Assembly (NCBI GenBank): GCA_965649765.1
Contig: OZ287756.1
Coordinates: 50,344,001 to 50,408,000, forward strand
Reading direction: 5' to 3'
Length of the DNA: 64,000 bases
Source: Bispira polyomma
Taxonomy: Eukaryota
Of the stretch, positions 2,848 through 42,900 are shown piece by piece. How positions within the stretch are numbered: position 1 is the stretch's first letter; each line of letters opens with the position of its first letter. The position numbers and the translations under genes were made by a program. The notes below the pieces were generated by a model. The model made no database searches, was not told where the DNA came from, and was given only the letters and a program-made list of their open reading frames with translations.

Positions 2848-3554
2848 AAATCTAAGATAACATTTTCCTAATGACACTATTCTTAAATTTAAAGTATATT
2901 ATATGTAATTACAAATCTTTTTTCGCTATTTGTAGATCTTCATTTTGTGATATATTTCAGCAAAGATTTTTTTAGTTCTTAAGTTTGATTCTTTTATATT
3001 TTTGCAATGTGTTGTATAACAATAATTATGTGTTGTTCTTTTTAATTGTTATTCTTGTTGTTTATAGTACTACTTCTTTGTGTAAATAAAAGTTTGTTGC
3101 TTTGTATTTGTGAGTTGTTTTTCATGTTCAAGAAAAAACAAATTTAAAAAAATTCATTTTGTCAGCCATTTTGAATCCGCCATTATGTTTTTAGCCGGTT
3201 TATAGCGGCGATAACACAACATATACAACATGCCTGGTCTAAAAATACCTGAACTAAAGATGTCTGGTGAAGATTGTGGCTACTGTATTTAAAGGGAATA
3301 CTGTGAGTTGACAAAGGATAAAGACACTGCAAAGGCTGATTATTACTTCAAGTCACAGTTGGATATCGCAGCACTGTGCACTGCTATGCCAGGTGAGAGA
3401 CTTAAAATAATAACATATACTATTGAATCTCACATACCCAATGCCGATAAAGTGATAGGTGTGGATGGATAAATTGGGGAGCATTTTACAGTTCAATTAT
3501 GTGTGATAGATTTTAATTTTAGGCGCAAACACAAATGGTCACAAGTTTGCCTCC

Positions 3555-3700
3555 CATCGATGTCTGTGGGAAAGGTGGTAGTTACTTACTGTATGCCGCT
3601 GGTTTCAGTGCAGAACCTTGATCAACTGTATGCAATATTTCCTTTAGCGTCCCAACTATGCATGATGACAAGCTAGTATATCCTGTGCCAATATAAAGCC
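3555..3700 (+). mobile_element. SINE fragment (same family as 49281)
   Basis: TGTGGGAAAGGTGGTAGTT...GCTGGTTTCAGTGCAGAACCTTGATCAACTGTATGCA matches the SINE body. Confidence 0.75.
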
Positions 3701-8089: not shown

Positions 8090-10060
8090 CAAATTGATTG
8101 CAAGATAGGTAAGTGATTTGTTGTGATATTTACCAGACTTAATAAGTGGGTCTCTGGCCTTTTCCCAGCAATCAGGGATTATACTTGTCTGATGTCACAA
8201 CAGAGACCAGTCTGGAGATGTATAGACTGCAAGATAGGTAATAGGCAAGTGATTTATTGTAATATTTACCAGATTTTGGAATACGTAGATCTGTTACCCG
8301 GTGTCACGACAGAAAATGGAGATGTATCCAATGCAAGATAGGGAAGTGATTTATCGTAGATAAATATGTAGATCTGTGGCTTCTTTCTAGCAATCAGGGA
8401 TTATACTTGTTGTCTGGTGTCACAACAGAGACCAGTTTGGAGATGTATAGACTGCAAGATAGGTAATAGGTAAGTGATTTATTGTGATATTTACAGATTT
8501 AGAAATAGTAGATCTGTTACTTTTTTCCAGCATTCAGGGATTACACATTATCTGGTGTCACAGCAGAGACCAGCTGGAAGTGTCATGATTGCCGAAAACA
8601 GGCAAGTTATTTATTGTGATTTTTACCAGGTTTTGGAATTATTCTCTTGTCTTTTTTTAATATCAGAGATGTACATGTGTAGAATAAATTTAAGCTGTAT
8701 AGTTAATTAGCAAGATAGGTAACAAAGTGATTTATTGTAGATAAAAAGTGAGATCTGTGGCTTATTTCTAGCAATAAGGGATTACACCTGTTGCACAGTA
8801 TCTGAACAGAGTCTGGAGATGTATCCAGTGTAAGATTTGTAAGTTAGTGATTTATTGTGATCATTACCAGGTTTTGGAATAGGTAGATCTGTGGCTTCCT
8901 TCAAGCAATAAGGGATTACACCTCTTGCCATGTGACCCTACAGAGAGATGCATGGATTGTATGAAACAGGTGATTTATTGTGATTTTACCAGGTTCAGAA
9001 ATACATAAATCTCTCGCTTCTTTGTAGCAATCAGGGATTATACGTTTCCGGGTGTCACAACAGATACCAGTCTGGAAATGTATAGACTGCAAAATAATAG
9101 GTAAATAAATTATTGTGATCTTTACCAAGTTCAGGAATAGGTAGATTGGTGGTTTCTTTCCAGCAATCAGCAATTACAACTGTTTCCTGGCAAGTGCCTT
9201 ATTGTGATCTTTAATAGGTTTAGGCATAGGTAGATATGTGGCTTCTTTCTAGCAATCAGGGATTAAATGTTTCCTGGTGTCACAACAGATACTAATCTGG
9301 AAATGTATAGACTGCAAGATTGGTAATGGGTTAGTAAGTTATTGTGATCTTTACAGGTTGAGGAATATGTAGATTGGGGACTTCTTTCCAGCAATCAGTG
9401 ATCACAACTGTTTCCTGGCAAGTGCTTTATTGTGATCTTTACCAGGTTTAGGTGTAGGTAGATATGTGGCTTCTTTCTAGCAATCAGGAATTACACCTGT
9501 TGTCTAGTGTCACCACAGAGAGATGCCCGGATTGTAGGAAACAGGCTACTGATTTATTGTGATCTTTAACAGGTTTAGGAATAGGTAGATATGTGGCTTC
9601 TTTCTAGCAATCAGGGATTACACCTGTTGTCAGATGTCACAACAGAGACCAGTCTGGAAATGTGTAGACTGCAAGATAGGTAATAGGCAAGTGATTTATT
9701 GCGATATTTACCAGATTTATGAATAAATAGATCTGTTACTTCTTTCCATCAATCAGGGAATACACATTTCCTGATGTGACAGCAGAGACCAGCTGGAAGT
9801 GTCATGATTGTCTAAAACAGGTAAGTTTTTTATTGTGATATTTACCAGGTTTAGGAATTATTGTCTTGTTGTCTTTTTTAATATTAGAGATGTACATGTG
9901 TGGAATAATTATAAGCTATATAGTTAATTTGCAAGATAGTTAAGCAAGTGATTTATTGTAGATAAAAAGGGAGATCTGTGGCTTCTTTCTGACAATCAAT
10001 TGTCACATATAATTAAGTTGTGGCTTCTTTCTGACAATCAGTTGTCACATATAGTTAAGT
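8090..10060. repeat. Complex satellite, ~100-135 bp subunits with a ~1.2 kb higher-order duplication
   Basis: Repeated GTGATTTATTGTGAT(A/C)TTTACCAG...AGATCTGTGGCTTCTTTCTAGCAATCAGGGATTACAC...CAGAGACCAGTCTGGAGATGTATAGACTGCAAGATAGG. Confidence 0.9.
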
Positions 10061-22150: not shown

Positions 22151-22202
22151 TTAAAACTTATAAAACAAACCTATTTCCTTTAAATAATTAAAAATAATAT
22201 AT
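22151..22202 (-). pseudogene. Displaced last codons of LINE ORF2 (IIFNYLKEIGLFYKF*)
   Basis: In frame with ...LKELLHTNVY at ~39970 once the piggyBac and one ATAT are removed. Confidence 0.85.
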
Positions 22203-25083
22203 CCTTTAGAGTGCCAAAATGTAATTTGCCGTGTTTTTTTTTCGATTGCCGTAATGCGGAAGACCTAACTCTGTTGGACTGCCGAACCGTAATTTGCGTA
22301 TAAAATTCCAGCTTTAGACAACGCCACATGTTTATTCTGCAGGAGTGCCAAACCGTAATTTGCGGATGTTTTTTCAGTTATTTGAAGCGCGGTATGTAAG
22401 TACAGGCCAAGAGCCGTTTTAGTTTTTTTGTAGCTATTTATTTATGATAAAACAAAGTGAGAAACATTCCTGTGCTACATATTTTAAAGGGTGGCAAGTA
22501 TTGATTATTTTTTGTCTGCCATCTCGTAATATTATGTTCATTTAACACAGAAAAGGACCTTTAGAAAAGGCCCATATTATCGCCCACTGTGTAGGCACCA
22601 TATAAACATCTTGTTAGACATGAATGTATACATTCTTTCGTCAAATTAAACATGTTATCTGTTACTAAAATAGTATGTAAGTATCTTTCTTAAATCCAAT
22701 AAAAATAAAATTTAAATGCTGCTGAGATTTTACGTAAGAAATACATCCACTAAATTACACATTGGCGCTGACAGGTTCCTACATTTCCAATGTTGTCTCC
22801 ATGTGTCGATTAGGGCCGTTATTCTAAAAATAATTGCCGATTATTCACTCATAACTCAGAAATTACTGAAGTTAAAAATAACATGAAAATATTCCGAGAA
22901 AGCTTACTTTATTGCGATTAGTTTGGTTTTTGTTGTATCAAAATCTGTCGAGAAATGGCCGAGATATTTAAGTTTAAATACAGGTACCCATTTGCAGATA
23001 AATAGTTGAATACGTCAAAATAACCTTGAAATAAAAGACAAGCCCATTAGTTTATTAATATTCTATTTCCATCATTTATTCTACTGTTCTATAAGACAAA
23101 TCCTTCTTAAATATTGTCTTAATAAACTTATTTGTCTCAGCCATTTGTTAATGGATTTTTATTAACATTGCCTTTGAAATAATATACTTCGATTTTTTTC
23201 TTCATTGATTGTCAGGGACCAATTTACATATATTTATTTCTATATACTTGGAGCCAAATCCCTGTGGAGTAAAACCTCTTGCAAGATACCCTACCTATTT
23301 TATCACTGTGTACCAATTATCGCTACCCAAATTGTAACTTTTTTATGTGATTAGATTCCTGAAAAGAAATTTATCAGACAAAAATGTTTACTGCCCTGCT
23401 TCCTATTATCGACAGGTATCAATTATCGCCAGCCTAAATTTTAAACCAAATTCTTTGTTGCCAAAACAGCCCTGTTTTCATTGATGTGTGGCTGTTAGCG
23501 ACAGAGTGGTTAACATAAACCATACTTCACAAATCTGAAAACGGCACATGTAACATACAAAAAGAACCTTCCAAAGTTGTTTGCGGTTATATTGGTAATA
23601 AATAACAGCCGTATACAGTGTTATAACTTGTGGCCAAGCTAAAAGCAATTGTTTAAAAATATATCATCATTTAAAAATATTTCTGTATCTCGCTTTGTAT
23701 ACATAATTGTAAATTGTCGTGTCAGATTTGTTAACTTCTGTCCCTCGCCATGCATATCAACAGTAAAAATCAAAGCATCGTCAAGGACAGACAAATTGCT
23801 CTATATAAATTTAAACTATTATAAAATGGCAAATAGTATCTCCTAAGTCTGAAAAAATTTGGCGTAGCTTTTGCTGTGTATTGTAAAAGATCAGCTACAA
23901 TTAAATGGGAGTGATTGAATTGGTACATGGTGATAGGTGGTACATGGCAGTAAATAGTATACATTATAATAATTTACATTCATATAGTTTAACAGATTGG
24001 TTCATTAATAAGTTCATTCTGGGTAACAAAATTCTCCAGTGGGTTAGACCGGTTTTCTGTCCCATCACAGGATGATTTTATTTTACTGATAGTAAGCATC
24101 ATGAGTGACAGAATTGTTAACTAGCGAATCCTTGTTAATGTGTAAGAACAATAAAAATGCCAGAAATAACACCCTAAAATCAAGAATTGGTTAGTAGAAA
24201 CTACATGTACATGGAATTGAAGATAAATGAAAATAAATGACAATATCAAAATTTTTGTGAACCATTTTAGTCCATATTTGTAAGTATCAAAAATGAATGC
24301 AATTATTATACACATCTTGAATGAAAATGTAAAAGTGTATGTTTCAGACAGTTAATGCTTGGAAAAGAACTGGTGTGGATCTGTGGCCAGATGAGGCGAT
24401 TTGTCTGGATAACGCACCATTTACTGACTGAACACTACTGCCCATCAGCATTGACTACTGATTATTGCAACCCCAAATTTAAATCATTACATTAAATGTG
24501 AGTAGCTTCTGAACATTTTATTTCTGAGTGTCGGTAATTGGTAGCCAACAATAATTTGTAGCATGGAAGTACCAGGAAAGTTTTTTCACTCAATTAAATA
24601 AACTAAAAACAAGTTTGCCAGAGTTAATAAGTTACGGCGGATTTACAGCATGGTCCATGTGTTGTACATTATATTCCAGGAATTATTCTAGATTACGATT
24701 GTCTGTATCCAAACAATTATGGGGCAATATGATGAGCCAACTAATTTTATGAAAAGTAACTTTTATGTATTTACGTATTGTGAATGAAATATATTCATTG
24801 GTAGGAAACTGTCAACTTATTATTTATTACTAAAATTAGTTGTATTTTCCCTGAGTGAAAATATTAGTGTATCATTTATACGCAGAAATGTGAAAAACAG
24901 TTACACACACTATGTTGATCTAACACGTACTACTTTGTATATGTACAAATCTCAATCCAGGTCCACAGATTAACCAGCTTGACAGAAAAGATTTGATTGG
25001 TCACAAGTTCTAATGGATTGTCACTTCAAATAATTGGACTACCAATTAAGGTAACATTTTGAATGTGTGTGCAACTAATGAAG

Positions 25084-25240
25084 CAGGGGCCATATTCACA
25101 AACAGTCTTAGTCTTAAGCTTAACATTTATGTCTAAAATATTTGATGGATTTGTGTTAAGAGCAATGTTTATGCAAACCAAAGACCTGTTCTTACTGTCC
25201 CTATACTTAAGACTAAGACCGTTTGTTAATACGGCCCCTG
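25084..25240. mobile_element. MITE (PIF/Harbinger-like TIR)
   Basis: CAGGGGCCATATTCACAAACAGTCTTAGTCTTAAG ... CTTAAGACTAAGACCGTTTGTTAATACGGCCCCTG. Confidence 0.8.
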
Positions 25241-25324
25241 CTTCATTAGTTAATAATAACATAACATACTTGAACCTAATCATTTGTATTGTTGTCAGTA
25301 CAGTTTACATTCAAAACTATCTAT

Positions 25325-25832
25325 GTAGAGTCATTTTTCGTTTGGGAATCCGTACTGATGTCACACCATACCTTAAGAAACTTCTCTGGCTTCCTATTCA
25401 CCATCGAATCCTGTTTAAAATGCATGTAACCATTTTTAAAGCTGTTGTCTCTCAACAGCCTCACTACCTCACTACTAAGCTTTCCTTCAGCAGCCTTCCA
25501 AGGGGAAAAAGACTCTGTTTTCTTTAAAACACCCACCAAGAGGGTTGGATTTAAAGCCTTCTTGGTCGCCGCCCCTATGTTATGGAACAGTCTTCCAGTT
25601 GAACTCAGACTGCTCGATACACTTTCTGGTTTTAGGAAAAGGCTTAAAACCTATCTCTTCAGCCTCGCCTATCCGCCGTAGTCCTCTTCCTGGGCGCTGA
25701 CGCATCCATCCTTACGACCTGGCTATGTTTTTCATTATTCTTTTGGCTGATTGATTCTGATATTGCGCCTTAGAAGATGCCTAGCAACAATAACGCGCAT
25801 TAAAAATATACAATACAATACAAAAAATACAA
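25325..25832 (+). mobile_element. 5'-truncated L2/CR1-group LINE 3' end
   Basis: VTPYLKKLLWLPIHHRILFK and AFLVAAPMLWNSLPVELR...FRKRLKTYLF; (CAATA)n tail at ~25808-25832. Confidence 0.85.
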
Positions 25833-27246
25833 TGTATGGTAGATATTTTGACAATCAAATTGTGATGCAAATTTTTAAGTTCTGGGTTTATTAATCTGTA
25901 TTTTATAAATTTCCTCATTTGTTTTAAAAGTTATTTTTAAAATGTATAGCCAATGGTTTAGAACAAGATATCATCAAGACTGTGCTCTATTTATGGCAAT
26001 TTTCACTTTAATATGGCACTTGCCATTCGTAATACATGCACTATCAGCCGACACTAAAATATGTGTTATATTTTTAAGGATGAGAGTCCCAAAAATTAAA
26101 AACAGTTTAGCCATTGACCTGGATAGGTAAGAATTGGTATTGTATTTTGTTTAATATTTTTACACTCTTTATTTGTGAGAGGTATCTTCTAAAACCACAA
26201 CAACTAAATCAATAAACCAATCATGTGTCCTACAATATAGCCTGGGTCGTCACCAGTTAGCAATGATGTTTACATCTTGCCCAAGCATGTTATATCCCAC
26301 CAATGAACCTAGTGACATTAGCAGGATTAAAACTAGGGATCTTTCAATCATCAGATAAACTCCTTTAATCTAGAATCGAACCGGGGACCTTCCGATCACT
26401 AGACCAATTCCCTAACCAGTAATCTACTGTGCACCAATTTATGCATAAGTTTTAACAGATCATGCTTCACTGTCTGTTGTTAGTCCAGATTAATTTTATC
26501 AATTCCATTGACAATGTACTGTTGTCATGAATAATGAAAAAGTTATATTGTATAAATTGTTGTTGCACTGCATTTTATTCTAACAATATGATACTACAGA
26601 AAAAGTCTATTTATCTGAACGATGCTAAAGACATCAATTTTGGTCTGACAAACGGAATGTTTGTATGTTATTTTTGCTATCGGCAGTTTGACCCGGTTCC
26701 TAGAATCTTCCATTGTCGCCCCAGCCTCTTACAGCATGATAACAATATTCCATCCCAAAATACATTCAAACCTACCTTATACAAGTGGCGAGTGGCTGGT
26801 GTTTTACTATAATCCTTTCATTCAACAATTGGCCATTGTTTTGGTGGAAAAGACTGACAGCCTCTTGATGAATAGGTTGATTAAAATTCGCTTTTGTAAC
26901 ACAAATAAATGCTTTTAAATTAAAAAATATATATATACTTACATAGAAAATGATACTTGTTTTCTAGTGCTTTGTGTTATGAAATTTAACCCTCTGATAG
27001 AATATTGAATAAAATCCCTGATTATTGCCCACAGAACCGTTTTTATGAGACAAATGTTTTAAAAGTTGGGGGACATCGGTTTGGTTAAACTAGATTTACG
27101 GATGAATGGAGGTTGTATAAACAAGATTCTTCTGTACTCTTATTTAAGCTACTTAAGTTACTTTAAAATCCACAGCATAGGGTGAATAAGGTTGTTTAGA
27201 CTGATTATTTTATGATTGATGCCAAACTATAATGTTAATATTTCAG

Positions 27247-30200
27247 GACTGCATGCTTTTCTAATGAAAAACTTGATTCAGTGGCACAAAGTTTATTACC
27301 AGAGGAATATGGTCATCTGATTCCAGTTAAATGTACTGGCGATGGAAACTGTCTGTACAATGCCATGTCCATATTAATTTCTGGTAAATTAATAGTTAAG
27401 TAATTTTTTATGTTAGCTAGTGTGATGTTTAATGTCAGTATTGTTGCTGCCTTTATTAATTCTGCCATATGTTATTGTTTGGACTTGCCTGTATTTGTGT
27501 GTAGCAGAAAAACTGATTTTTTTTTCATGTGGAACAATTATATCAATATTCTATTATCAAACATAACAACGTTTCTGCTGTTGACAGGTGTCTCGCTTGT
27601 CTCATAGCATCCATTTCTGTTGCCCAAATATTTATCAAACATTTTAATCAAGGTCTGTAACTACAAAATTTAATATACTTGTACATTATTACTTATGTCA
27701 CAGCCATTCATGGCTATCCGTCAATCAGATGATGCATTTTTCTTGCCTGAGACTGAACCTCTGGAAATACACATAGATTTAGCCACTGTGGCCTAGTGGT
27801 TAACATACTCATTTAGGAACACAGAGGAGCTGGGTTTGATCCTAGTATGGGTTGACCAGATACACAAAGATACATAGTGGCTCAGATGACCACTCAAATG
27901 ACAGTCCTCTGTCATTAGGGCCTATCCCCAGTGGCAGGCTACAGATCCTTTTAGATGTTGATAAATTGTCACCCCAAGCCTCACACTTCAGGTAGGCGAA
28001 TGGTAGTTAACTGATGCTGGTTGGCTGTTTGCAGTCAAAAATAGGTTAATTAGTGCTTTGACTACCAGATAAAAGCATATAACTGTACTGAGTATCAATT
28101 TGAATAGAATAAAATATTTGCATTAGGAGCTTCTATCCTATAAGGCATACTACAGTATTCATATTTTGAAGTGTGAGTGTAAAGATTTACCACACATAAT
28201 TTGACTTCCTTTGGCCTTGAAGAAATTGCATGTTCATACACAGTACCTAACTCTATGTTTGGCATATTAACGGCTATTATATTAAGATTGAAAAAGGTTT
28301 TGTGAAATAATATTTACATATGGGAATAATTTGAGATGCTTTGGAGCTAAAATTTGAGTTTAGTTTCATTGTAAGTTTGGTATTTTGTCTTTACCTAAAG
28401 TCTATATATGGGCTATAGGTATTTTTTTCCCCGTACAACCAGATAGGCGGCCATCCAGGCAGCGTATGCTTATGTTTGTTTGGGCTAGTTCTTAGAAACC
28501 GAAGTAAGTTTATATTTAGTACAAGTATTTTTAGGGGGTTGTAGTTATGCAATGTCATGGTCTGATTTCACCCAAAGGCTGGGGGTTTGACATCCTTACG
28601 CTATTTTTTTTTTACAAAATTCAATATTCTTTATCATAACATAATTGTGTCATTTAAAATCATGTACTAATTGCCTGACTGGTAATCTGTCTTAGGTGAT
28701 GAATCCCTCAGTGACTACCTTCGCAAAGAGAGTTCAAAAGAACTGCAAACAAACTCAGAGCATTATGCAAAATACATAAAATATCATATTGAGTGTAACA
28801 ACCAAAATGGTGTTTTTGATGATGAAACATTGTTTCATTCAATGCTTTCGGAAGACACAGTAAAGATATATGAAAATGTGAAGAAAGACAAAATAAAACT
28901 GCTACAAATTGAAGTTGATCTATCCATAGTTTCTGGAAGGTGGAGTACGTTTATCAACTTATTCCCCTTGAGCACAGTTTCCAGAAGGAATTTATGTTCA
29001 GTTTACCCAACCAAAAATCCACCATTAAGATCGGTCTACAATTCTACCATAACCTCAAGGTGCAAGACTACACAACCTGATGCCCATATATTGTGGTCCA
29101 GAGATGGCATGTTAGAGAAGGGAATGTACACACCAAATCATTTTGTGCCTTTATTACCACTAACTCTACCAACAGTTTTAGATTTAGATGATAGTTTTGA
29201 TGAAATATTGTCTCAACTAGATTTGGCAAATGTGACAATGGATTCCTCAATCAGCCTGCTTACACCTGACATAAGTGTAAGTAACACTGATTTAGCCCAA
29301 CAGGACATGACCAACATTCATGAGGAAAATAACAAAATACAAAAACCTAATGAGGATCAAACTGTTCAACATGAACGCATCAATACTGGAGATGAGAGCT
29401 CTACAGAGGATCAAACTGTTCAACATGAACGCATTAAGACCCAAAATGAAAACTCTACTGAGGATCAACCTGTTCAACATGAACACATTAATACTGAAGA
29501 TGAAAGCTCTACTGAGGATCCAACTGTTCAACATGAACGCATTAATACTGAAGATGAAAGCTCTACTGAGGATCCAACTGTTCAACATGAACGCATTAAT
29601 ACTGAAGATGGTAGCTCTACTGAGCATCAAACTGTTCAACATGAACGCATCAGTACTGAAGATGAAAGCTCGAATGAGCATCAAACTGTTCAACATGAAC
29701 GCATCAATACTGAAGATGAAAACTCTACTGAGCATCAAACTGTTCAACATGAAAACATTATTACTCAAGATGAAGGCTCTACTGATGATCAAACTGTTCA
29801 ACATGAACACATCAATACTGAAGATGGTAGCTCTACTGAGGATGAACCTGTTCAACATAAACGCATTAATACACAAGATGCAAGTTCTACTGAGGATCAA
29901 AATGTTCAACATGAACGCATCAGTACCCAAAATGAAAACTCTACTGAGGATCCAACTGTTCAACTTGAACACATTAATGCTGAAGATGAAAGCTCGAATG
30001 AGCATCAAACTGTCCAGCATGAACGCATCAATACTCAAGATGAAAATTCTACTGAGCATCAAACTGTTCAACATGAACGCATTAATACTGAAGATGAAAG
30101 CTCTACTAAGGATCAAACTGTTCAACATGAACGCATCAGTACCCAAAATGAAAACTCTACTGAGCATCAAACTGTTCAACATGAAAACATTAATACTCAA

Positions 30201-33200
30201 GATGAAGGTTCTACTGATGATCAAACTGTTCAACATGAACACATCAATACTGAAGATGGTAACTCTACTGAGGATCAACCTGTTCAACATAAACGCATTA
30301 ATACACAAGATGCAAGTTCTACTGAGGATCAAAATGTTCAACATGAACCCATCAGTACCCAAAATGAAAACTCTACTGAGGATCCAACTGTTCAACATGA
30401 ACACATTAATACTGAAGATGAAAGCTCGAATGAGCATCAAACTGTTCAACATGAACGCATCAATACTGAAGATGAAAGTTCTACTGAGCATCAAACTGTT
30501 CAACATGAACGCATTAATACTGAAGATGAAAGTTCTACTGAGCATCAAACTGTTCAAGTTGAACGCATTAATATCCAAGATGAAAGTTCTACTGATGATC
30601 AAACTGTTCAACATAGATGCATTAATACCCAAGATGGAAGCTCTACTGATGATCAAACTGTTCAACATGAATGCATTAATACCCAAGATGAAAGCTATTC
30701 AGAGGATCAAACTATTCAACATGAACCCATTAATAACCAACATGAAAGTTCTACGGAAGATCCAATTGTTCAACTTAAACGCATTAATATCCAAGATGAA
30801 AGTTCTACTGATGATCAAACTGTTCAACATGAATGCAATAATACCCAAGATGAAAGCTCTACTGAGGATCAAACTGTTCAACGTGAACGCAATAATACCA
30901 AAGATGAAAGTTCTACTGGTGATCCAACTGTTCAACATAAACGCTTTAATACCCAAGATGAAAGCTGTACTCGTTATCTAACTGTTCAACTGGAACGCAT
31001 TAATACTGTAGATGAATGCTCTACTGATGATCAAACTCTTCAAGATGGATGCATCAATGCCCAAAATGAAAACTTTACTGAGGTTAAACGGCTCAAAAAG
31101 AAAAGGATCAGTATCCAAGATACTAAAACCAAGAAAAAGCTGTTTAAAAGTGTTACAAAATCAGTAAGAAATAATTGTAACACAAAGGTTAAAGAAAATA
31201 AATATATCAATGTTGCAAGTGTTTTTAAGAAAGGCCAAAAAAGACAAATATCTGAAAATGATTGTAGTTTAGATATATTGGCAAAGGCATTAAAGAGGAA
31301 AAAAACTATATTAAATGACACAAGAAATGGTCTAGAATCATCTGACAATGACTCAGACATTAGCTTGGACTCTGATATTGAATGTGTTCAATCAGATGAT
31401 GATGATGATCCAGCTGAAACATTTACAGACAGCCTGACATGGAAAAGTAAATGTTTTCCAATGAAAAAGCCCAAATTTGCTGGTCCGGCTCCAGGAGTGA
31501 GCAAAGATTTTGTTTTGGATAAGGATGCAAAAGAATTAGACTTTTTTTTCAGTTTTTTTCCAGAAGCAATGCTTTCTGAAATGGCCAAAAATGCAAATAA
31601 GTATGTACCAATCTACAGTACATTGCATTCCAAATTATCAGATGACCCATACATTGACAAGGACTTCAAACCTATAACAGAAAGTGATATCAGAGCTTTC
31701 TTTACCTGCAGGATGGTGATGGGGGTAACAAAACTACCTCATACTGATGATTATTGGTCCACAGATCCAGCCATGAGGAATAATTATATCAGCAGAATAT
31801 TGTCACGAAGCAAGTATAGGCAAGTAAACCGCTACTTCCACATTAATGATCCTACAAAAGACCCTGCACGGTTAACCAACAGAAAGGCCAAAACTGAAGG
31901 TATGGCCAATGATCCACTGTATAAAATTCGCCCATTGCTTGACAGCATCAGAGCACAATGTTTGAAGTTATATAATCTGAATCAGGAAATATCAGTTGAT
32001 GAGGCAATGATTAAGTTCCATGGTCAACATTTTGGCACTATCGGAGCACCACATAAACCCGCCAAACGAGGGTTTTGCATCTTTGCATTAGCTGATGGGC
32101 ACAATGGTTACTTTTCCAACTTTGAGGTATACCTTAGAAAAAAAGAAAAAGAAGTGGGTCTCACTACTCGTGTTGTAGAAGACCTGGCAAGACCATTCTA
32201 CAACAGGCAACATATAATTTTTGTGGACAAATTCTATACGTCAACGAATTTAGCATTGTCATTATTAAATAAAGGGACCCAGTTAAATGGATCATTTAAC
32301 AAAGCCCGTAAAAATTGGCCAGAGGATTTGAAGCCAAACTGCAGTGTCCGAAAGAAGGTTGATCCTGTCAGAACATTGGAAAGAGGGCAGTGCATATACA
32401 GACAGACAGAAAACGGAAAGCTAGTAGCATGCATATGGAAAGATTCTTCCTTGGTCTACAACCTAAACACATGCTACAATATCAATGTGAAGATCACAAA
32501 TGTTAAAAGAAAGACCAGGTTAAATGGAGCATGGATTGTGGATGATCTCCCCTGTCCTGAACCCATCAAAGAGTTTAACAGATTTATGGGGGGAGTAGAC
32601 CAACATGACCACCTGAGAAGTAGTTACACTGTTCAAAGAAAAGCAAAAAAGTGGTGGCATTATTTTGCCTGGTTTGCGATTGACATATCGTTGATCAATG
32701 CATATATACTATGGAAGCTGACCCACAAAGGGACTCACAAAACTTTCAGTTAGAGGTGATTTTGAAATATAAGTTGAATTTTGTTTATCTGTTTGACTTC
32801 TTTGCTTGTTACACTGTCTTGCAGGAAATTTTGAAATTTATTTATTTTTGGTTTATTATTTTTGTTTCTGTTTTTACAATTTCAAACATGCATAGCCAAA
32901 TACAGTTTACAAGTTATTTTGTCATCTTTTTCTTCAGAAATGGTGTCTTATAAAGATTGCAGAGCTGGGGCCATATTCGCAAAAGGGATCAGTGAAAGTG
33001 AAAAATTTGAAAACAAAAATTGGCTGAGCAAAAGATGAGCGAACAATAAGCTCAAATGTTTAGATCAGATCAAATTTGGTATTCACTTTAAAGTTGAGTT
33101 GATTTTTCACTCATCTTACAATACTAAATATTGCTTGAAATTTGTTATATAAGCTATTATATGTCTTTATAATCGTTTGTCCAGCCAAAATAAAGCCTAG

Positions 33201-34765
33201 TACTTCCAAGTTTAGTTTTCTGCCAGGTGATCAAAATTATGGCTATATCAAGATTATGGTCACTGACGATACAATTTAAATGGAAAGGAATTCATATAAC
33301 AGCTGTTTAATATGTACAAAAAACTTAAAAATTGTGTTTTAGTTGTTAAAACTGATATAATTTTTGGCTTAGCTGATCCTTGCTTTGTGAATACCAATTT
33401 GATCGAAAGCTCAGCTAAGCCTTTTTGAAAGCTGATCTTGAGCTGATTTTTCGCTCAACTTGATCCATGTTTGTAAACATGGCCCCTTGCAGTTTAATAT
33501 TAGTTCAAAAGCTTGGATTGTTTTGGCCAGTTTATTAATTTGGATGAATAGCTATTTATAATAATATTTGGTGGTGGTTTTGTTATTTTACAAAGGATGC
33601 ATAACTTTTAGATAATTTACAGCTGCCAAATTTCAACCTGTTATTGATTGTAATACTTACATAGGTTGCTAAGCAGCTGTCAGGACAAAATTTTATATGT
33701 TAAAGTTTTAGTGCAGGTCGATTATGTTGAATGTTTGGCATGATATTTGGTGGTGGTTTTATTAATTTACACAGGATGCACAAGTACAGCCAATTTATAG
33801 CCGACAAATTTTAACCTGTTATTACTTGATTTTTTTTAGGTTGCTAAGCAGCTCTCAGGAGAGTTCACACGGACAAATCGCCAAAACCAAGAAAGAGACA
33901 TTGGGCCTCAAGCCGAAGGACATACTAGAACCGTATTCAAAGGGCGACCGAGAATCTGTCTGCAATGCAAACGGGAGGGAAAGAAGACACAACGTGGGCG
34001 GTGTCCAGAGACACCACTGGGTTGTCTCGACTGTGGTGTCCATGTTCACAAGTAATTTTTTATTTCATATGGATGTATTCATAATTAAGTTATTGTCAGC
34101 ACTACAACACCTGTTCTCCACTGTATACACCAGTAACTGCAATTCCCTAACTAGGCCGCAATAGCAGTTAGGTGCATTACCAATATACTATCAGTCATGT
34201 TTTAACTTGGTTAAAGTATGTTTATATTATATTTTGGATATTGACTTTCCACAAACTTGTCTTTTTTTTGTTGAGTAAATTTTTTAAGGAAAAGATATGA
34301 AAGATATGTTTTTTGATAAATATGTGCAGTGAACAGTTTATGTTACTTAAATAATATGATTCTGTTATTTTACGTGCATAAATGTGAAATGGGGTTGATT
34401 GGTATTTTAGAATGTTTCCCTTCAAATACAATGCAATTTAATGCCATCGTATTATTAGTTGCATGAAAACGTTTGTATTAAATGATATCTATGTGTATTA
34501 TTACAGACAATGCTTCATTGCATTTCACAAGGGTGAATGTTACAGATCAAAGTCAAAAATTATTAATTTTGACAAATCCACACAGTGCCCAGAAGAAAAG
34601 CATGACCAGGAAAGTTTTGATCAAATTCATACAGACTTCCCTGTGGAGAAGAAAGACCATGTAAATGATAAACATCAACGCTCAAAGCGTGTGCATACAG
34701 ATGCAGCACTCGAACCAAATGAGAGACAGAAGCGTTCAAAACGTGGGCGTAAGAAAAAGTTGTAA
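27247..34765 (+). CDS. Spliced OTU/vertnin-like protease - 18-aa repeat - piggyBac DDD transposase - Cys-rich domain fusion; exons 27247-27383, 28696-32755, 33840-34051, 34507-34765 (upstream exons not identified; 1-nt frameshift near 32740)
   Basis: GT-AG introns with matching phases; CTGDGNCLYNAMS...SVYP...ILWS...PNHFVPL (OTU/vertnin); SVDEAM, VDKFYTS and MGGVDQHD (piggyBac DDD); CLQC...CLDCGVHVHKQCFIAFH (CRD). Confidence 0.85.
27781..28000 (+). mobile_element. Degenerate tRNA-headed SINE within an intron
   Basis: A-box-like TGGCCTAGTGGTTAA and B-box-like GGGTTTGATCC. Confidence 0.5.
29350..31082 (+). repeat. In-frame 54-bp coding minisatellite (EDQTVQHERINTEDESST, ~32 units)
   Basis: Visible directly in the DNA and in the 1307-aa ORF. 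Confidence 0.95.
32965..33486. mobile_element. MITE (PIF/Harbinger-like) in a transposase intron
   Basis: GGGGCCATATTCGCAAAAGGGATCA ... TGATCCATGTTTGTAAACATGGCCCC. Confidence 0.75.
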
Positions 34766-35090
34766 GTTAAATAAAATGCCAGAACATGAAATAATAATTG
34801 GGCCTTAGTTGTAAAGTTAAAAATTTTAAAAATGTATTTCGGCTGTTTAGTATGTTTAAGTGATGTTATCAACGAGTTTTGCCTTAGAAAGGTAGGTGAA
34901 ACTCGTTAATGTAGTGGTTTTTGATCGGTAGGACAGTATTGTTACCTAATTTGTTTTCATTTTTGGAGCTGATTTCGGTCTAATATACATCTTTTAGGGC
35001 AAAAATAATGCACCTGTTTAGATATTTGCAAAATGTACTTTATTTTTCTTTAATAATTGAAGGTTTACCAGTGTGACCTACCTGGATAAC

Positions 35091-35699
35091 CCTGGGGCCG
35101 TATTCACAAAAGGGATCAGCTCAAATCTGAAAAAAAGATTAACTTTTACTCAACTTTTGGCTCAGCTCCAACTTGGTATTCACAAAAAAAATTAGCTGAT
35201 ATTTGGCTCAACGTTTTGCTCAACTTTAATCCCTGCAGGTAGCTGGTTTAAATTTGGATCAGTGTGTATCAAATATGGCGGAATTCAGTTGTGTGAAAGA
35301 ACTAGTTTATTTTTCATCAAGGAGTCTCCACCGCCAGCGTATTTTCCGTGACCGTATGAACCCACTTCATTACCTAAGTGATGAAAATTATATTCAAAGT
35401 ATAGGTTTAGCAGAATGGAATATTGTTTTTAATAGAAGTTTTACAGAATCAACTAAGTCGGCCCACCAATCGATCACACTCTGTTCCTATCCATCTGCAT
35501 ATTCTGGCTTCCGTGTATTATTTGGCAAGTGGCAGCCATAATTGCAGACGATAATGTATTGGAAGTATGAAGTTTGTTTACATCTCACATTTTCACGCGT
35601 GATCTTAGCTTACACCGTATCAAATAGTTGAGCTCTTTGGCTCATATTTGAGCTGATCTTAAGCTGATCTTGAGCCATTTTAGTGAATACGACCCCAGG
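35091..35699 (+). mobile_element. Internally deleted PIF/Harbinger transposon
   Basis: TIR CCTGGGGCCGTATTCAC / GTGAATACGACCCCAGG; internal RQRIFRDRMNPLHYLSDE resembles the Harbinger transposase N-terminus. Confidence 0.75.
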
Positions 35700-35879
35700 A
35701 ACCAGTAATTAATGCTTGTTCCTGTTGTTTATTACCATTTACGTGCATGCGCACAGGTCACGAAAGCACATCTCGTTTGTTATGTTTGGTATTATCGCCT
35801 GCATTCTCGCCAACATTGCTCATGTCAAAAAAACAAATTTCATAATATTTAACATAAACTTATTTTTAAGCCTGAAACT

Positions 35880-36296
35880 ATTATGTTGATGGTTGTATAT
35901 TCCTTAATGTACACAAGGGCTTCTATTGGGCCAGAGGTTAATAATGTTGATGATTGTATATTCCTTGATGTACACAATGGCTTCTGTTGGGCCAGAGGTT
36001 GTTGATAGTTTTATATTCGTTACTGTACACGAGGCTTCTATTGGGCCAGAGGTTAATAATGTTGATGATTTTATCACCCTTAATATACACAAGGGCTTCT
36101 ATTGGGCCAGATGTTAATAATGTTGATGATTGTATATTCCTTAATATACACAAGGGCTTCTATTGGGCCAGATGTTAATAATGTTGATGATTGTATATTC
36201 CTTAATATACACTAGGGCTTCTATTGGGCCAGAGGTTAATAATGTTGATGGTTGTATATTCCTTAATATTCATTAGGGCTTCTATTGGGCCAGATG
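35880..36296. repeat. ~61-bp tandem repeat, ~7 copies
   Basis: GGGCTTCTATTGGGCCAGAGGTTAATAATGTTGATGATTGTATATTCCTTAATATACACAA. Confidence 0.9.
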
Positions 36297-37193
36297 TATG
36301 GCTATAATGAAATTTCTTGATTTTTTCTTGATGCACTTGACTTACACTTGTAATTATTTTTATATGCAATTTAAGTGATTTTAACTAGTGGGTATTTTGT
36401 TCATATTTTGTAAATAACTTGTTTATATTTTGTTTGGTTTGGTACTTGACTTTTTTTAGTTGTAGTAGAAGCTTTTCACTAGAACAAAATTGTCTTTGAT
36501 AAACATATATTTGTGTTTACCGGATTTTACTTGGTTTTTATAATTTTGTAGTTTTAACTTTTATTGTATCTTTTGGTGGTAATAATTCTTGAGATTTAGT
36601 AAATTATCTGTTCAAAGTTAAAAAAAAAAATAACCTTTTTACGGACATTTTTAGTATAAACTCAGTTAAACTTCAAATTTTTATAAAGGACTTAATCCTG
36701 CTAGGATATTTAGTAGTTTAAAATGATCATATTGTATTCTGTGTACATGGAATTGTCCACTAAAACAAGCGATTGTATCTATATTTACAACCTGTGAGGG
36801 ATATCTTCCATGGTGAAAAAAATAAAATATGCTCTTTTTATGCATTTTTGTTTTACTGTGGTTTTGACAATTAGTACATAAAGTATTGTCTTTGCAGAGT
36901 TTTAGGTATGACTATATATTAAATCAAGGCCATAATGTTAAAATGTACAGTCTAACCCTGTTATTTCGAATTTAAAGGAACCACCCGACTTACTTCGACA
37001 TAAGCAGAACTCGAGTCCATGGGCGATAATGAAAGATTTTAACCAAATACATTTTATATGCATTTTGAATTAAAATCGTTGAAGTGAATGATAAATAAAG
37101 ACATATAATTTAATGCAACTGTTTATCCTTTTTTATGCAACAAAACAATAAAATTCTTAACAAAGGTTGATTTTTATGAGGATAACTTTCGTG

Positions 37194-39648
37194 ACATTGG
37201 CCAATAACAGATTTTGTCACAAGTATCTTTACCTTAACACAACAAACATACAAAATTACACATTGGCTAATAACCGATTTTGTCAAACGTATGTTCACCG
37301 TAACACAGCAAACATACAAAATTACACATTGGCCAATAACAGATTTTGTCAAATGTATCGTTACCTTAACACAACAAACATACAAAATTACACATTGGCT
37401 AATAACCGATTTTGTCAAATGTATGTTCACCTTAACACAGCAAACATACAAAATTACACATTGGCCAATAACAGATTTTGTCAAAGGTATCTTTACCTTA
37501 ACACAACAAACATACAAAATTACACATTGGCTAATAACCGATTTTGTCAAATGTATGTTCGTTCACCTTAACACAGCAAACATACAAAATTACACATTGG
37601 CCAATAACAGATTTTGTCAAATGTATCTTTACCTTAACACAACAAACATACAAAATTACACATTGGCTAATAACAGATTTTGTCAAATGTATGTTCACCT
37701 TAACACAGCAAACATACAAAATTACACATTGGCCAATAACAGATTTTGTCAAATGTATCTTTACCTTAACACAACAAACATACAAAATTACACATTGGCT
37801 AATAACAGATTTTGTCAAATGTATGTTTGCTAATAACAGATTTTGCCGCATGTATCTTTACCTTAACACAACAAACATACAAAATTACATATTGGCCAAT
37901 AACAGATTTTGTCACACTTAGGTTCACCTAAACACAGCAAACATACAAAATTACACATTGGCCAATAACAGATTTTGTAACACTTAGGTTCACCTAAACA
38001 CAACAAACATACAAAATTACACATTGGCTAATAACAGATTTTGTCACAAGTATCTCTGCCTTAACACAACAAACATACAAAATTACACATTGGCCAATAA
38101 CAGATTTTGTCACATGTGTCTTTACCTTAACACAGCAAACATACAAAATTACACATTGGCCAATAACAGATTTGGTCAAATGTATGTTCACCTTAACACA
38201 GCAAACATACAAAATTACACATTGGCCAATAACAGATTTTGTCAAATGTATCTTTACCTTAACACAGCAAACATAGAAAATTACACATTGGCCAATAACA
38301 GATTTTGTCACACTTAGGTTCACCTAAACACAACAAACATACAAAATTACACATTGGCCAATAACAGATTTTGTCACAAGTATCGTTACCTTAACACAGC
38401 AAACATACAAAATTACACATTGGCTAATAACAGATTTTGTCAAATGTATCTTTACCTTAACACAACAAACATACAAAATTACACATTGGCCAATAACAGA
38501 TTTTGTCACATGTATCTTTACCTTAACACAGCAAACATACAAAATTACACATTGGCCAATAACAGATTTTGTCAAATGTATGTTCACCTTAACACAGCAA
38601 ACATACAAAATTACACATTGGTCAATAACAGATTTTGTCAAATGTATCTTTACCTTAACACAACAAACATACAAAATTACACATTGGCTAATAACCGATT
38701 TTGTCAAATGTATGTTCACCTTAACACAGCAAATATACAAAATTACACATTGGCCAATAACAGATTTTGTCAAATGTATCTTTACCTTTACACAACAAAC
38801 ATACAAAATTACACATTGGCTAATAACAGATTTTGTCAAATGTATGTTTGCTAATAACAGATTTTGCCGCATGTATCTTTACCTTAACACAACAAACATA
38901 CAAAATTACATATTGGCCAATAACAGATTTTGTCACACTTAGGTTCACCTAAACACAGCAAACATACAAAATTACACATTGGCCAATAACAGATTTTGTA
39001 ACACTTAGGTTCACCTAAACACAACAAACATACAAAATTACACATTGGCCAATAACAGATTTTGTCACGTATCTTTACCTTAACACAGCAAACATACAAA
39101 ATTACACATTGGCCAATAACAGATTTGGTCAAATGTATGTTCACCTTAACACAGCAAACATACAAAATTACACATTGGCCAATAACAGATTTTGTCAAAT
39201 GTATCTTTACCTTAACACAGCAAACATACAAAATTACACATTGGCCAATAACAGATTTTGTCACACTTAGGTTCACCTAAACACAACAAACATACAAAAT
39301 TACACATTGGCCAATAACAGATTTTGTCACAAGTATCTTTACCTTAACACAACAAACATACAAAATTACACATTGGCTAATAACAGATTTTGTCACAAGT
39401 ATCGTTACCTTAACACAGCAAACATACAAAATTACACATTGGCCAATAACAGATTTTGTCAAATGTATCTTTACCTTAACACAACAAACATACAAAATTA
39501 CACATTGGCCAATAACAGATTTTGTCACATGTATCTTTACCTTAACACAGCAAACATACAAAATTACACATTGGCCAATAACAGATTTTGTCAAATGTAT
39601 GTTCACCTTAACACAGCAAACATACAAAATTACACATTGGCCAATAAA
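37194..39648. repeat. 66-bp satellite, ~37 copies, inside the right end of the piggyBac
   Basis: Unit AAATTACACATTGGCCAATAACAGATTTTGTCAAATGTATCTTTACCTTAACACAACAAACATACA. Confidence 0.95.
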
Positions 39649-39967
39649 ACAGTCAATGATAAAATTGCCGCATTACTTATCTTTTATATGCCAATGTGTA
39701 ATTTTGCTATGTTGCCAGTGCATTTTTTTTTTAAATGTGCTAAATTACACATGGCCAATGCAGCACTCAAATTTTTATACAGCCAATTACACATTGGCAC
39801 TCCTGCAGACTTATATATGAAGCACTATCAAAAATCACTTTAATGACGCTAAATTACGGTTTGGCACTCCAGCAGCATTTCATATATGGTTTTTGTAAAT
39901 TTGACTACAAACATGGCAAATTACGGTTTGGCACTCCGACAGAGATAGGTCACTGGCAGTGTAAAGG

Positions 39968-42900
39968 ATATACGTTTGTATGTAACAATTCTTTCAAATT
40001 ATTACTATTAAAATGTTTTATTTGAACGTCATGTAGGTCGATACAGTCTAATAATATATGCCTGACTGTATCGGGACAATGACATGGAATGCACCAGGGC
40101 TTATCCTCACCTTTCAACAGATAACTATGTGTAAAATAGGTGTGTCCTATACGGGCTCGAGTAATAACTATTTCTTCCCTACGAGATAAACCCGTCCAAA
40201 AATTAAAAGCTCCAACTGTAGGGTTTATTTGAAATAGTTTGTTATCAGGACACGCATTCCATTGGGCTTGCCACTTTTGTTTAAAAACACTATTTACATT
40301 AACTTTGAAGTCTGTATAGGGGACTTTCAAGTCTAAAATGTTAAAATTCAATGCTTGTTTAGCAAGCTTGTCTGCCACTTCATTGCCCTTAATACCTACA
40401 TGACTAGGAACCCATGCTAAAATTACTTTTTTGTTCACTGACAAACACGGATTAAAAACCTTTAAAATATCCTGTAAATAGGGATGATCACAGTTATTGC
40501 CATCAATGGCTTTCAGACTAGATAGAGAGTCAGTGAATATAATAAACTTTAACCCCTCACAATGTCTAATAATGTTAAATGCCATTTTCAGAGCCTGCAA
40601 TTCAGCTGTGAATATGCTAGCATTGCCAGGTAACTTGGGCACTGAGGCCATTTGATGTTGCTGCTGCAGCTACTTTGTTTTTATCTTTAGAACCATCAGT
40701 ATATATTGCCCTGTGATCAGAATAACAATTGATCAACTGGCTAAAGAGACTTTGAAATAAATAATCGTCTCCTATACATTTTTTATTTTGTGCCAAGTAG
40801 TAATCAATGTGTGGTTTTTGTATAGTCCAGGGTGGGTCTTCTGGCAATGACACAGTCTGAATTAAATCCAACCGAGGACAACAGCAGCTAAGTCTGCCTT
40901 AATACGATGCCCAAATGATCTTATAGCTGATGGTTTATTTTCATACTTATCAATGTACTGGGGGTTATATACTACTTCATAGGTTGGATTTTGAGGGTTA
41001 CTTTTCAACTTTATTGCATACTGAACACACAGTTTATGAAATCTCAGGTATAATGGTGGTTCATTAGCTTCTACATATAAGCTTTGCATTGGAGAAGTCC
41101 TGAAGGCTCCTAGGCATATTCTTAAGCCCTGGTTTTGAATGGGTTCCAATTTTCTCAAATAAGACTTACGGGCAGAGCTAAAAACTGCACAACCATATTC
41201 CATCCTTGATCTAACAAAAGATCGATACATCCTTAGTAGTACACTTCTGTCTGCACCCCAATCCATTTTTGAGACTACTTTTAATAAATTCATTGCTTTG
41301 TCACATTTCTTACGCACATAGTCAATATGTGCTTTAAAATTAAACTTGTTATCAAGTATAATGCCAAGAAACTTTGTTTGTGTTACTACAGGTATCTGAG
41401 TGCCATATAATGTCAATGTAGGATCTAGATGGAGTTTTCTTTTGTTACAGAAGTGCATGCATACTGTTAGTTTTAGAAAATTTAAAACCATTTTCATCAG
41501 CCCATTTTTCAATTTTATTCAGGCATAGCTGTAATTGTCTCTCTATAGAGGCCATATTATTTGAGCTATATGTTATTGAGAGGTCATCAACAAAGAGAGA
41601 CTTTTCAAAGTTGGATGGAATAATATCACTTATGCTATTGATTTTTAAAATAAACAAAGTAACAGCAAGGATACTTCCTTGAGGAACACCCATTTCTTGA
41701 TTGTGCATATCTGAATAAACTGATCCTAGACGAACTTTGAAAACTCTATTGGATAAAAAATTCTGAATAAAAACAGGCATTCTACCACGAAGCCCTGCCT
41801 TATACAAATCTCTGGCAACACCATATTTCCAAACAGTATCATATGCTTTTTCTAGATCAAAAAATACTGAAACTACATGGTTGCCTTTTAAAAATGAATC
41901 TCTAATTAAAGATTCAAGTCGAACTAATTGGTCTGTTGTCGTTCGACCTTTTCTAAAACCACTTTGATGTACACTTAAAATGTTGTTTTTTTCAAGAAAC
42001 CAAACCAATCTTGCATTCATCATTCTTTCCATGGTTTTGCACAAGCAGCTCGTCAAAGATATGGGACGGTAATTGGACGGGTTTTGTGGGTCTTTACCAG
42101 GCTTAGAAATGGGTACAATAGTTGCTTCTTTCCAGCATTCAGGGATTTCACCAGTTATCCATATTTCATTAAATATGTCTAATAGTACCACAAGTGAATC
42201 CCTTGGCAAATGTTTAAGTAATTGATAATGTACTTCATCAGGCCCTGTGGCTGTATCATGAGACTTTTTTAATGCATCTATCAATTCTGATATATTGAAC
42301 TCCATGTTATAATTTTCTTGGTTTCTTGATGCAAAATTAAGCTTTTCTTTTTCAGCCTTTTCCTGATATTTCTGAAACTTAACAGAGTAATTTTTACTGC
42401 TGGAATTTTTGCTTATTTCTTCTGCCAACATATTTGCTATATCTCCTCTTTCTGTTATTTTACTTCCATCAGTATTTACTAGATGTCTTACTGTTGTATT
42501 ATTTTGCCTCCCATTTATTTTCCTAAGCATTTCCCATACCTTTTTGGCTGAAGTATTTGTATTTAGTTTTGATATATATTCCTTCCAGGAGTTTCTTTTA
42601 GCTGCTTTAATTACACTCCGAGCCTTAGCCCTTCAGTTTCTATATTCATTTATATTTGCCGATGTTGGATTTATTCGGCATTTATCTAGGGCTTTCTGAC
42701 GAGCTTTTTGGACCCTTTTACATTCATCATTAAACCATGGTTTAAAACTACCAGTGGACTGTCCTGAGGATTTAGGTATACTTTTTGTGGCTGTGTCATT
42801 CAATTTACTCATAAAAACAGGAAACTTGTCACTCAAATTTTGAAATGTATGTCTATTAATTTCAAGTGAGCAATGTAGCTGATATTTTACCCAATCAGCC

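Follow-up and report, generated by a model that had tools for sequence, protein, structure and literature searches.

A very large piggyBac-superfamily transposon family of Bispira polyomma flanked by ATAT instead of TTAA

Targeting of TTAA is treated as a defining property of piggyBac transposons and is built into annotation pipelines and into the use of piggyBac vectors. The 157 piggyBac-like elements of a 2017 survey, in the text available, average 2,813 bp and run from 1,721 to 8,451 bp; the survey puts non-TTAA duplications of single copies down to mutation; its Supplement S2 lists elements with ATAT and two with identical non-TTAA duplications (PMC5381638). In cell assays, divergent tetranucleotides make up about 7%, according to the accessible part of PMC12324416, and a tip of the form CC[C/T]T is given as a hallmark of the superfamily in the available portion of PMC2872659. 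The cryo-electron microscopy structure of the piggyBac transposase from Trichoplusia ni, as far as the accessible text of PMC7351741 goes, has TTAA recognised unpaired, as single strands: an omega loop organises the target contacts through R275, Y283 and K290, the backbone is held by Y439 and Y283, the third base is read by N440, the methyl group of the second base fits into a pocket, and a hydrogen bond joins the first T and the last A. A literature search for a piggyBac lineage with ATAT, or any other non-TTAA target, as its rule returned sporadic cases only, and supplements, Repbase and Dfam may hold a counter-example. Here, a 64,000-nucleotide stretch of the Bispira polyomma genome (assembly GCA_965649765.1, contig OZ287756.1, positions 50,344,001 to 50,408,000; hereafter the window, whose positions are used below) was analyzed. 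Its positions 22203-39967 are occupied by a piggyBac-superfamily DNA transposon of 17,765 bp, which interrupts a long interspersed nuclear element (LINE) and which very probably represents a young, very large cut-and-paste family whose transposase picks ATAT and duplicates it.

Both ends of the element have the anatomy of a piggyBac element, as listed here.

22199..22202, no strand: left target-site duplication ATAT (letters read; a single 4-mer stands in 28 paralogous LINE empty sites)
22203..22216, plus strand: left terminal inverted repeat CCTTTAGAGTGCCA; its tip has the CC[C/T]T form usual in piggyBac
22211..22363, plus strand: 19-bp subterminal motif GTGCCAAACCGTAATTTGC, three times in direct orientation (starts 22211, 22279 and 22345; spacing of about 67 bp)
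39849..39934, minus strand: 19-bp subterminal motif, twice in inverted orientation (39849-39867 and 39916-39934; motif search)
39954..39967, minus strand: right terminal inverted repeat TGGCAGTGTAAAGG (letters read)
39968..39971, no strand: right target-site duplication ATAT (letters read)

The 14-bp terminal inverted repeats, CCTTTAGAGTGCCA on the left and CCTTTACACTGCCA at the right end, pair at 12 of 14 positions and give the tips CCTT...AAGG; they fall within the 12-19 bp and show the CC[C/T]T start of piggyBac terminal repeats. An earlier note made from the letters of the window had described imperfect terminal repeats with ATAT on both sides, and its coordinates and letters were correct on re-reading. 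Exact matches to the first 16 nt of the left end occur at 12 places in the genome, and those to the terminal 17 nt of the right end at 15. The subterminal regions are also joined by imperfect inverted repeats that are longer (28-39 nt) and 79-93% complementary. The 19-bp motif has five matches in the window (three left, two right) against 0.02 expected by chance. On the left, motif copy 1 overlaps the terminal repeat, and on the right a 19-bp spacer lies between the inner motif and the terminal repeat; the ends are asymmetric, since this spacing differs between them.

The only recognisable gene of the element encodes a piggyBac transposase.

28830-32753, plus strand: open reading frame (ORF) of 1307 aa, the only recognisable gene of the element
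31536..32705, plus strand: DDE_Tnp_1_7 (PF13843) catalytic domain (E 7.9e-70; 236 bits, with the cut-off at 22.4; match to profile positions 3-349 of 349)

The catalytic DDD triad is intact and corresponds to D175, D251 and D375 of a 425-aa query starting at 31476, aligned to D268, D346 and D447 of the T. ni enzyme. Among sequences of solved structures, the only matches were piggyBat (E 1.5e-27) and piggyBac (E 2.4e-17). With a full profile match and the complete triad, the piggyBac-like identity proposed from the letters is confirmed. Pfam searches with the element's 13 other ORFs of at least 65 aa returned nothing significant.

The element thus shares with piggyBac (IFP2, T. ni; 6x67/6x68) and piggyBat (Myotis lucifugus; 9c0f) the DDE_Tnp_1_7 domain, the DDD triad and equivalents of K290 and N440, as well as a short terminal repeat starting with CC, asymmetric ends with 19-bp internal repeats and a 4-bp palindromic duplication; a disordered acidic N-terminus and a C-terminal Cys-rich region, which those two also have, are predicted here. 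By contrast, it has ATAT in the place of TTAA, an omega loop reading HGQHFGTIGAPHKPAKRG where theirs is of the R..Y..K type, an identity to them of only about 25-30%, a length of 16-18 kb in its family as compared with 2.5 kb, predicted introns, a putative OTU-like module and 32 acidic repeats of 18 aa. Its enzyme, its terminal repeats and its 4-bp duplication place the family in piggyBac; the one textbook feature it lacks is TTAA, which is a behaviour and not a mark of ancestry.

Target sites were surveyed across the window's own 1.04-Gb assembly, which was searched with both element ends and with the transposase. When duplicated loci were counted once, 25 independent flanks (15 right, 10 left) were obtained. 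ATAT was found in 21 of them and TTAA, the target tetranucleotide of the superfamily, in none. Reading outward from the tip, A stood at position 1 in all 25 flanks, T at position 2 and A at position 3 in 24 each, T at position 4 in 22 and a purine at position 5 in 20; past position 5 the 25 flanks showed no clear base preference. Seven independent elements carry ATAT on both sides, and the sequence beyond it differs between loci. In 364 kb of the same genome the background frequency was 1.14% for ATAT and 1.17% for TTAA, and of the flanks adjoining an exact terminus 20/24 were ATAT (binomial P for at least 20, about 1e-35). Genome-wide, with up to one mismatch, the right tip followed by ATAT gave 21 matches (12 exact, seven with a one-mismatch tip and exact ATAT, and two that are the ATAC and ATTT cases mentioned below) and followed by TTAA gave none; the left tip gave 30 matches with ATAT and two with TTAA, both of the latter being one TTAT locus that is present twice. 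At two mismatches the 17-mer tip returned mostly noise (177 matches versus 98 for the control). In addition, when a 1.1-kb copy was compared with contigs from sequencing runs, contigs of other copies diverged from it at 2596-2602, right after ATAT. The use of ATAT instead of TTAA, suggested in the earlier note from a single locus, therefore holds family-wide, and tabulation of the 4-mers at other copies' termini, as had been proposed there, turned up no family copy flanked by TTAA.

As a positive control for TTAA, the same finder of terminal repeats and duplications was applied to 57 loci of metagenome relatives. CC...GG repeats with TTAA on both sides were recovered around the transposase in 11 loci belonging to at least two families, and TTAT flanks were seen in one degenerate element. 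All TTAA-flanked control loci encode transposases of the Y/Y type, that is, with Tyr at both of the positions equivalent to 283 and 439; relatives from other sources with Tyr at both contact positions have TTAA duplications.

Among the metagenome contigs, L138 and L139 were seen to combine a long unrelated inverted repeat with a degenerate Y/Y-type piggyBac copy flanked by TTAT. In L138, inverted repeats of about 270 bp (3044-3316 and 9149-9419), starting with ATAATATGTGACC, enclose a 6.3-kb segment that holds this copy.

The LINE interrupted by the element provided a view of the target before insertion.

39968..42530, minus strand: upstream ORF2 part of the host LINE, interrupted by the element, with reverse transcriptase (Pfam RVT_1, E 4.3e-29) and RNase H (RNase_H, E 1.1e-9)

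The last 16 codons and the 3' untranslated region of the host LINE resume to the left of 22202. Translated alone, the right flank of the window ends in KELLHTNVY and the left flank reads YIIFNYLKEIGLFYKF up to a stop codon; uninterrupted copies of the LINE end, before the stop, in KELLHTNVYSIFNYLKEIGLFYKF or NVNSVFNYLKEIGLFYKF. The LINE family is very young and abundant, with 343 first-look candidates, the best 40 of which were scored and found to be 97-100% identical. Thirty LINE loci were fetched: the window copy, its duplicate and 28 uninterrupted paralogues. In 28/28 of the latter a single 4-mer stands between AA(T/C)ACT and ACATTTG, namely ATAT in eight and ATTT in 20, as compared with two 4-mers in the filled site. 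The insertion therefore duplicated 4 bp, a pre-existing ATAT, in a LINE subfamily that already held ATAT there. The same paralogues support the view, put forward from the letters, that the element moved after the LINE had inserted. The host LINE as a whole splits at the insertion site into two subfamilies, with ATAT and ATTT and with Y and N, respectively, in ORF2. On C8, three LINE 3' ends (48871073, 48873660 and 48876247) lie exactly 2,587 bp apart, a spacing that suggests a tandem array of truncated copies.

Restoring the LINE reading frame had been the original argument for ATAT. The host frame is real and fixes the amount removed as the element plus 4 nt; the argument leaves two readings, a 4-bp duplication of ATAT between CC..GG tips and a 2-bp duplication of TA between TCC..GGA tips, which predict an identical empty site. 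The empty site that had been predicted proved right in its single ATAT and two bases off the nearest paralogues, which read AATACT-ATAT-ACATTTG against the predicted AATAAT-ATAT-ACGTTTG; these two differences are ordinary substitutions.

The best surviving alternative is thus that the duplication comprises only 2 bp, TA, between tips TCC...GGA, and that the transposase still needs an A-TA-T context. A palindromic ATAT yields identical filled and empty sites under both readings, and sequence alone cannot separate the two registers. We nevertheless regard the shorter duplication as improbable: the piggyBac transposases studied, in the accessible text of PMC7351741, all make a 4-bp stagger that is fixed by the geometry of the active site, and the CCTT tip fits the CC[C/T]T hallmark described in the part of PMC2872659 available. 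Furthermore, the A at -4 is kept in 25/25 flanks and the T at +4 in 22/25, so that the recognised site is ATAT either way. This conservation of both outer bases across the family, along with homology to piggyBac, decides in favour of the ATAT register.

A second alternative takes the ATAT-flanked termini to belong to another superfamily, with the piggyBac gene a captured passenger. The 17.8-kb length, most of it non-coding, and the existence of short relatives that share the ends only would suit such a history. It is very improbable, though, given that the 13 other ORFs of at least 65 aa hold no other protein domain, that 7/7 transposase copies are enclosed by such ends, always at the same offset, and that the element resembles piggyBac in its tip, in the length of its terminal repeats, in its 4-bp duplication and in its asymmetric 19-bp subterminal repeats. 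Finally, hardly any credence is left for an ordinary TTAA-specific piggyBac whose flanks have mutated, met ATAT by chance or landed in (AT)n microsatellites, despite ATAT being followed by AT in 7/15 right flanks and despite the ATAT duplications reported, in the available texts, for CsuPLE1 (2/21 sites; PMC4273485) and for single-copy cases by Bouallegue et al. 2017 (PMC5381638), since TTAA is absent from the 25 flanks and from the genome-wide matches of tip plus TTAA, ATAT and TTAA are equally common in the genome, the LINE empty site is ATAT and not TTAA, most flanks are not microsatellite, and ATAT, a minority or a single copy in those reports, is here the rule (21/25).

Under the preferred reading, that of a piggyBac transposase which picks and duplicates ATAT, the enzyme would choose the palindromic ATAT, with a weak preference for a purine just outside, and ATAT would be duplicated by the 4-bp staggered strand transfer typical of piggyBac. 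The chemistry could remain unchanged, with the excised ends closed by a 4-nt hairpin, the donor site left with complementary 4-nt overhangs and its repair seamless, because ATAT is self-complementary like TTAA and keeps the central TA. The switch at the outer positions might be due to a remodelled omega loop and a neighbouring residue. In an alignment of the window enzyme to 6x67 made with HMMER, which is ungapped in this region, R275 is replaced by H, Y283 by G and Y439 by F, and K290 and N440 are kept. Across an alignment of the query with 228 relatives (229 rows), positions 283/439 read Y/Y in 153 rows, F/Y in 24 and G/F in seven, and 17 fragments have G with the second site missing. Wherever G at 283 occurs in a row with both positions filled, it is accompanied by F at 439 (7/7), one of these seven rows, P0022, being visibly misaligned near the second site; P0163 reads H/F. 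Every G row carries the omega loop VGAPNKPAKRG. In a FastTree phylogeny, 11 rows with the signature form one side of a branch with a Shimodaira-Hasegawa-like local support of 100.

The named members of this clade come from a scallop, a clam and a sea slug, and the clade holding the family is probably molluscan. Molluscan piggyBac-like proteins, for example P0002 ('PGBD2-like', Mizuhopecten yessoensis), P0019 ('PGBD4-like', Mya arenaria) and P0028 (Plakobranchus ocellatus), are 40-53% identical to the window transposase and have in common the VGAPNKPAKRG omega loop, EFN replacing YN where this part is present, and the HK.FQL. exon boundary; none of them is annotated with an OTU domain. A scan of viral contigs for members in other species found nothing. 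For a causal role of the omega-loop changes in the choice of ATAT the residue comparison is suggestive. The wider proposal is that the whole molluscan clade marked by VGAPNKPAKRG, Y283 to G, R275 to H and Y439 to F switched from TTAA to ATAT and that these residues set target choice; it is offered tentatively, as something we doubt rather more than we believe. Both of its parts, the structural cause and the spread across the clade, share that tentative standing.

Several observations weigh against the interpretation given here. Four of the 25 flanks are not ATAT (ACAA, ATAC, ATTT and TTAT), and the TTAT flank belongs to one locus, found twice on C9, whose right tip is altered. Neither an allelic empty site nor an excision site was seen: the 1.1-kb copy is present in 3/3 runs (two samples from one study), with no joint skipping it. 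As to the clade, the tree is a FastTree phylogeny with local support only and midpoint rooting, built from 204 rows with a domain coverage of at least 60%, the 25 shorter rows having been dropped; three metagenome contigs of the G/F type (L100, L101 and L150) showed no recognisable termini; and the link between omega loop and ATAT comes from one family in one genome.

A natural family using ATAT shows that the target specificity of piggyBac can evolve, and the short list of candidate residues (the omega loop and the Tyr beside N440) bears on the wish to change or narrow piggyBac integration sites. If a clade-wide switch did occur, it would offer a natural template for re-targeting piggyBac vectors, and pipelines based on TTAA would be missing part of the superfamily.

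The family is also unusual in its size. Seven full-length copies were found, with transposases 98-100% identical, which reduce to five independent giant copies after merging duplicates: the window copy and its inverted duplicate; C5:35704144-35721486; C1:95715104-95730906; C1:9846602-9874947; and a pair on C9, in direct orientation about 100 kb apart (34.53 and 34.63 Mb) and with identical flanks. The inverted duplicate (G000:C9:50424548-50442570) lies about 40 kb past the window copy; over 1.5 kb to either side the flanks of the two are 100% and 99.7% identical, and they were therefore counted as one insertion event. The open frame of the duplicate is 54 aa longer than that of the window copy, owing to three extra 18-aa repeat units. 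Either the LINE-plus-element block underwent an inverted segmental duplication recently, or its second copy is an artefact of the assembly. The distances between paired termini are 15.8, 16.3, 17.2, 17.3, 17.8, 18.0 and 28.3 kb, and the 28.3-kb copy holds a 12.5-kb insertion 172 bp from its left end. With variation in repeat number allowed for, the transposase stands at a constant offset from the termini in all seven copies. The giant size thus belongs to the mobile unit rather than to this locus, since it is shared by the full-length copies at this constant offset, and the claim that the element is far larger than the usual piggyBac is borne out in every one of them. The shared architecture was inferred from the coordinates of termini and of protein matches; a search with the whole-element DNA was swamped by a nested high-copy repeat, and colinearity is not shown by that search. 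The family about doubles the largest size (8,451 bp) in the 2017 survey of 157 elements. The family is young. Short relatives, about 0.9-1.1 kb long except for one of 97 bp, share only their ends with the giant copies; these are probably non-autonomous and dependent on intact copies elsewhere.

Most of the extra length of the element is non-coding, to which a 1.7-kb in-frame coding repeat is added. The repeats that could be delimited are these.

25308..25829, no strand: interspersed repeat of about 520 bp, nested and present in high copy number (first-look candidates, 23,115; matches that were scored, 91-93% identical)
29347..31083, plus strand: in-frame tandem repeat, 54 bp x 32, with an 18-aa acidic unit; its copy number varies between family members
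35883..36294, no strand: 61-bp tandem repeat, 6.9 copies (tandem-repeat analysis)
37194..39647, no strand: 66-bp satellite of about 37 units, 2.45 kb, beside the right end (repeat analysis)

The nested repeat corresponds to element positions 3106-3627, in the 5' region, and is not part of the ancestral element. Inverted repeats resembling miniature inverted-repeat transposable elements also lie inside the element. Among family copies the open frames range from 1355 to 1550 aa. The satellite unit holds a degenerate version of the subterminal motif (AAATTAC..TTGGC), and its period equals the spacing of the subterminal motifs; the family would thus have grown its own predicted transposase-binding motif into a 2.4-kb satellite.

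The transposase gene is predicted to be split, as follows.

27247..27383, plus strand: predicted exon A, encoding CTGDGNCLYNAMSILISG, with an OTU-type catalytic-Cys motif (AG/GT boundaries)
28696..32755, plus strand: predicted main exon with the rest of the OTU-like module (ILWSRDG and NHFVPLL), the 18-aa acidic repeats and the complete DDE domain (three-frame translation)
32739..32742, plus strand: run of four A in the window copy, against five in four other copies (copy comparison)
33840..34051, plus strand: predicted exon C, linker and first half of the Cys-rich domain (ICLQCKRE and CLDCGVHVHK; GT-AG boundaries)
34507..34765, plus strand: predicted exon D, second half of the Cys-rich domain (from QCFIAFHKGECY), basic tail and stop codon (GT-AG boundaries)

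Three introns are predicted, or four if a start exon lies upstream; such an exon should lie upstream of exon A, because exon A has no in-frame ATG. Calling the element intron-rich is correct only in part and goes too far: one 4.06-kb exon holds the repeat region and the whole DDE domain, and the extra length is mostly non-coding. The main exon is in one open frame in 7/7 copies; in the window copy this frame stops at the TAG at 32751-32753. The shorter A-run makes the window copy read THKTFS and stop, versus THKNFQLE followed by gt in four other copies, and relatives end at a conserved HK.FQL. followed by GT. Because the A-run is one base shorter, the C-terminal Cys-rich exons of the window are out of frame, and the window copy is probably non-autonomous, judging from its letters, unless the A-run is an assembly error. 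The DDE match contains one in-frame stop in the C5 copy and in the C9 pair, and none in the two C1 copies. The Cys/His pattern spans predicted exons C and D; a tblastn search with P0016, which carries PF13842, matched 33918-34046 (E 2.8e-4), and Pfam searches with exon C alone and with exon D alone gave no match.

At its start, the transposase gene appears to carry an OTU-like cysteine-protease module, as legible motifs suggest. Predicted exon A splices in phase into 28696, and the frame runs on through ILWSRDG to NHFVPLL, so that the motifs of an OTU-type protease for the catalytic Cys (GDGNCLY, exon A) and His (NHFVPLL, main exon) can both be read. The module is in frame with the transposase in 7/7 copies. 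Pfam Peptidase_C65 matched it with E 0.079, below the family threshold; the top Atlas matches were OTU clusters at 0.90 and 0.89, with low recognition; and an AlphaFold model of the part in the main exon reached a predicted local distance difference test score of 46, too low to use. Two relatives of the module were found, both without annotation. For one of them, P0229, the longest contig listed measures 14,812 bp; the figure for P0006, a member of the clade, is identical, and the two may lie on the same contig. A literature search for a fusion of OTU and piggyBac found none.

Within the intron that separates exon A from the main exon, the stretch at 27780-27870 looks tRNA-derived by eye, like a short interspersed nuclear element; ARAGORN called no tRNA in the element, this stretch included. 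The same genome also contains piggyBac families of the Y/Y type, one of them with open frames of 369 aa. A degenerate relative of the transposase lies at G000:C9:42091185-42092375 (40% identity, 24 stops) and one of the OTU-like module at G000:C13:1692299-1692604 (57% identity, three stops); both may be older members of the lineage.

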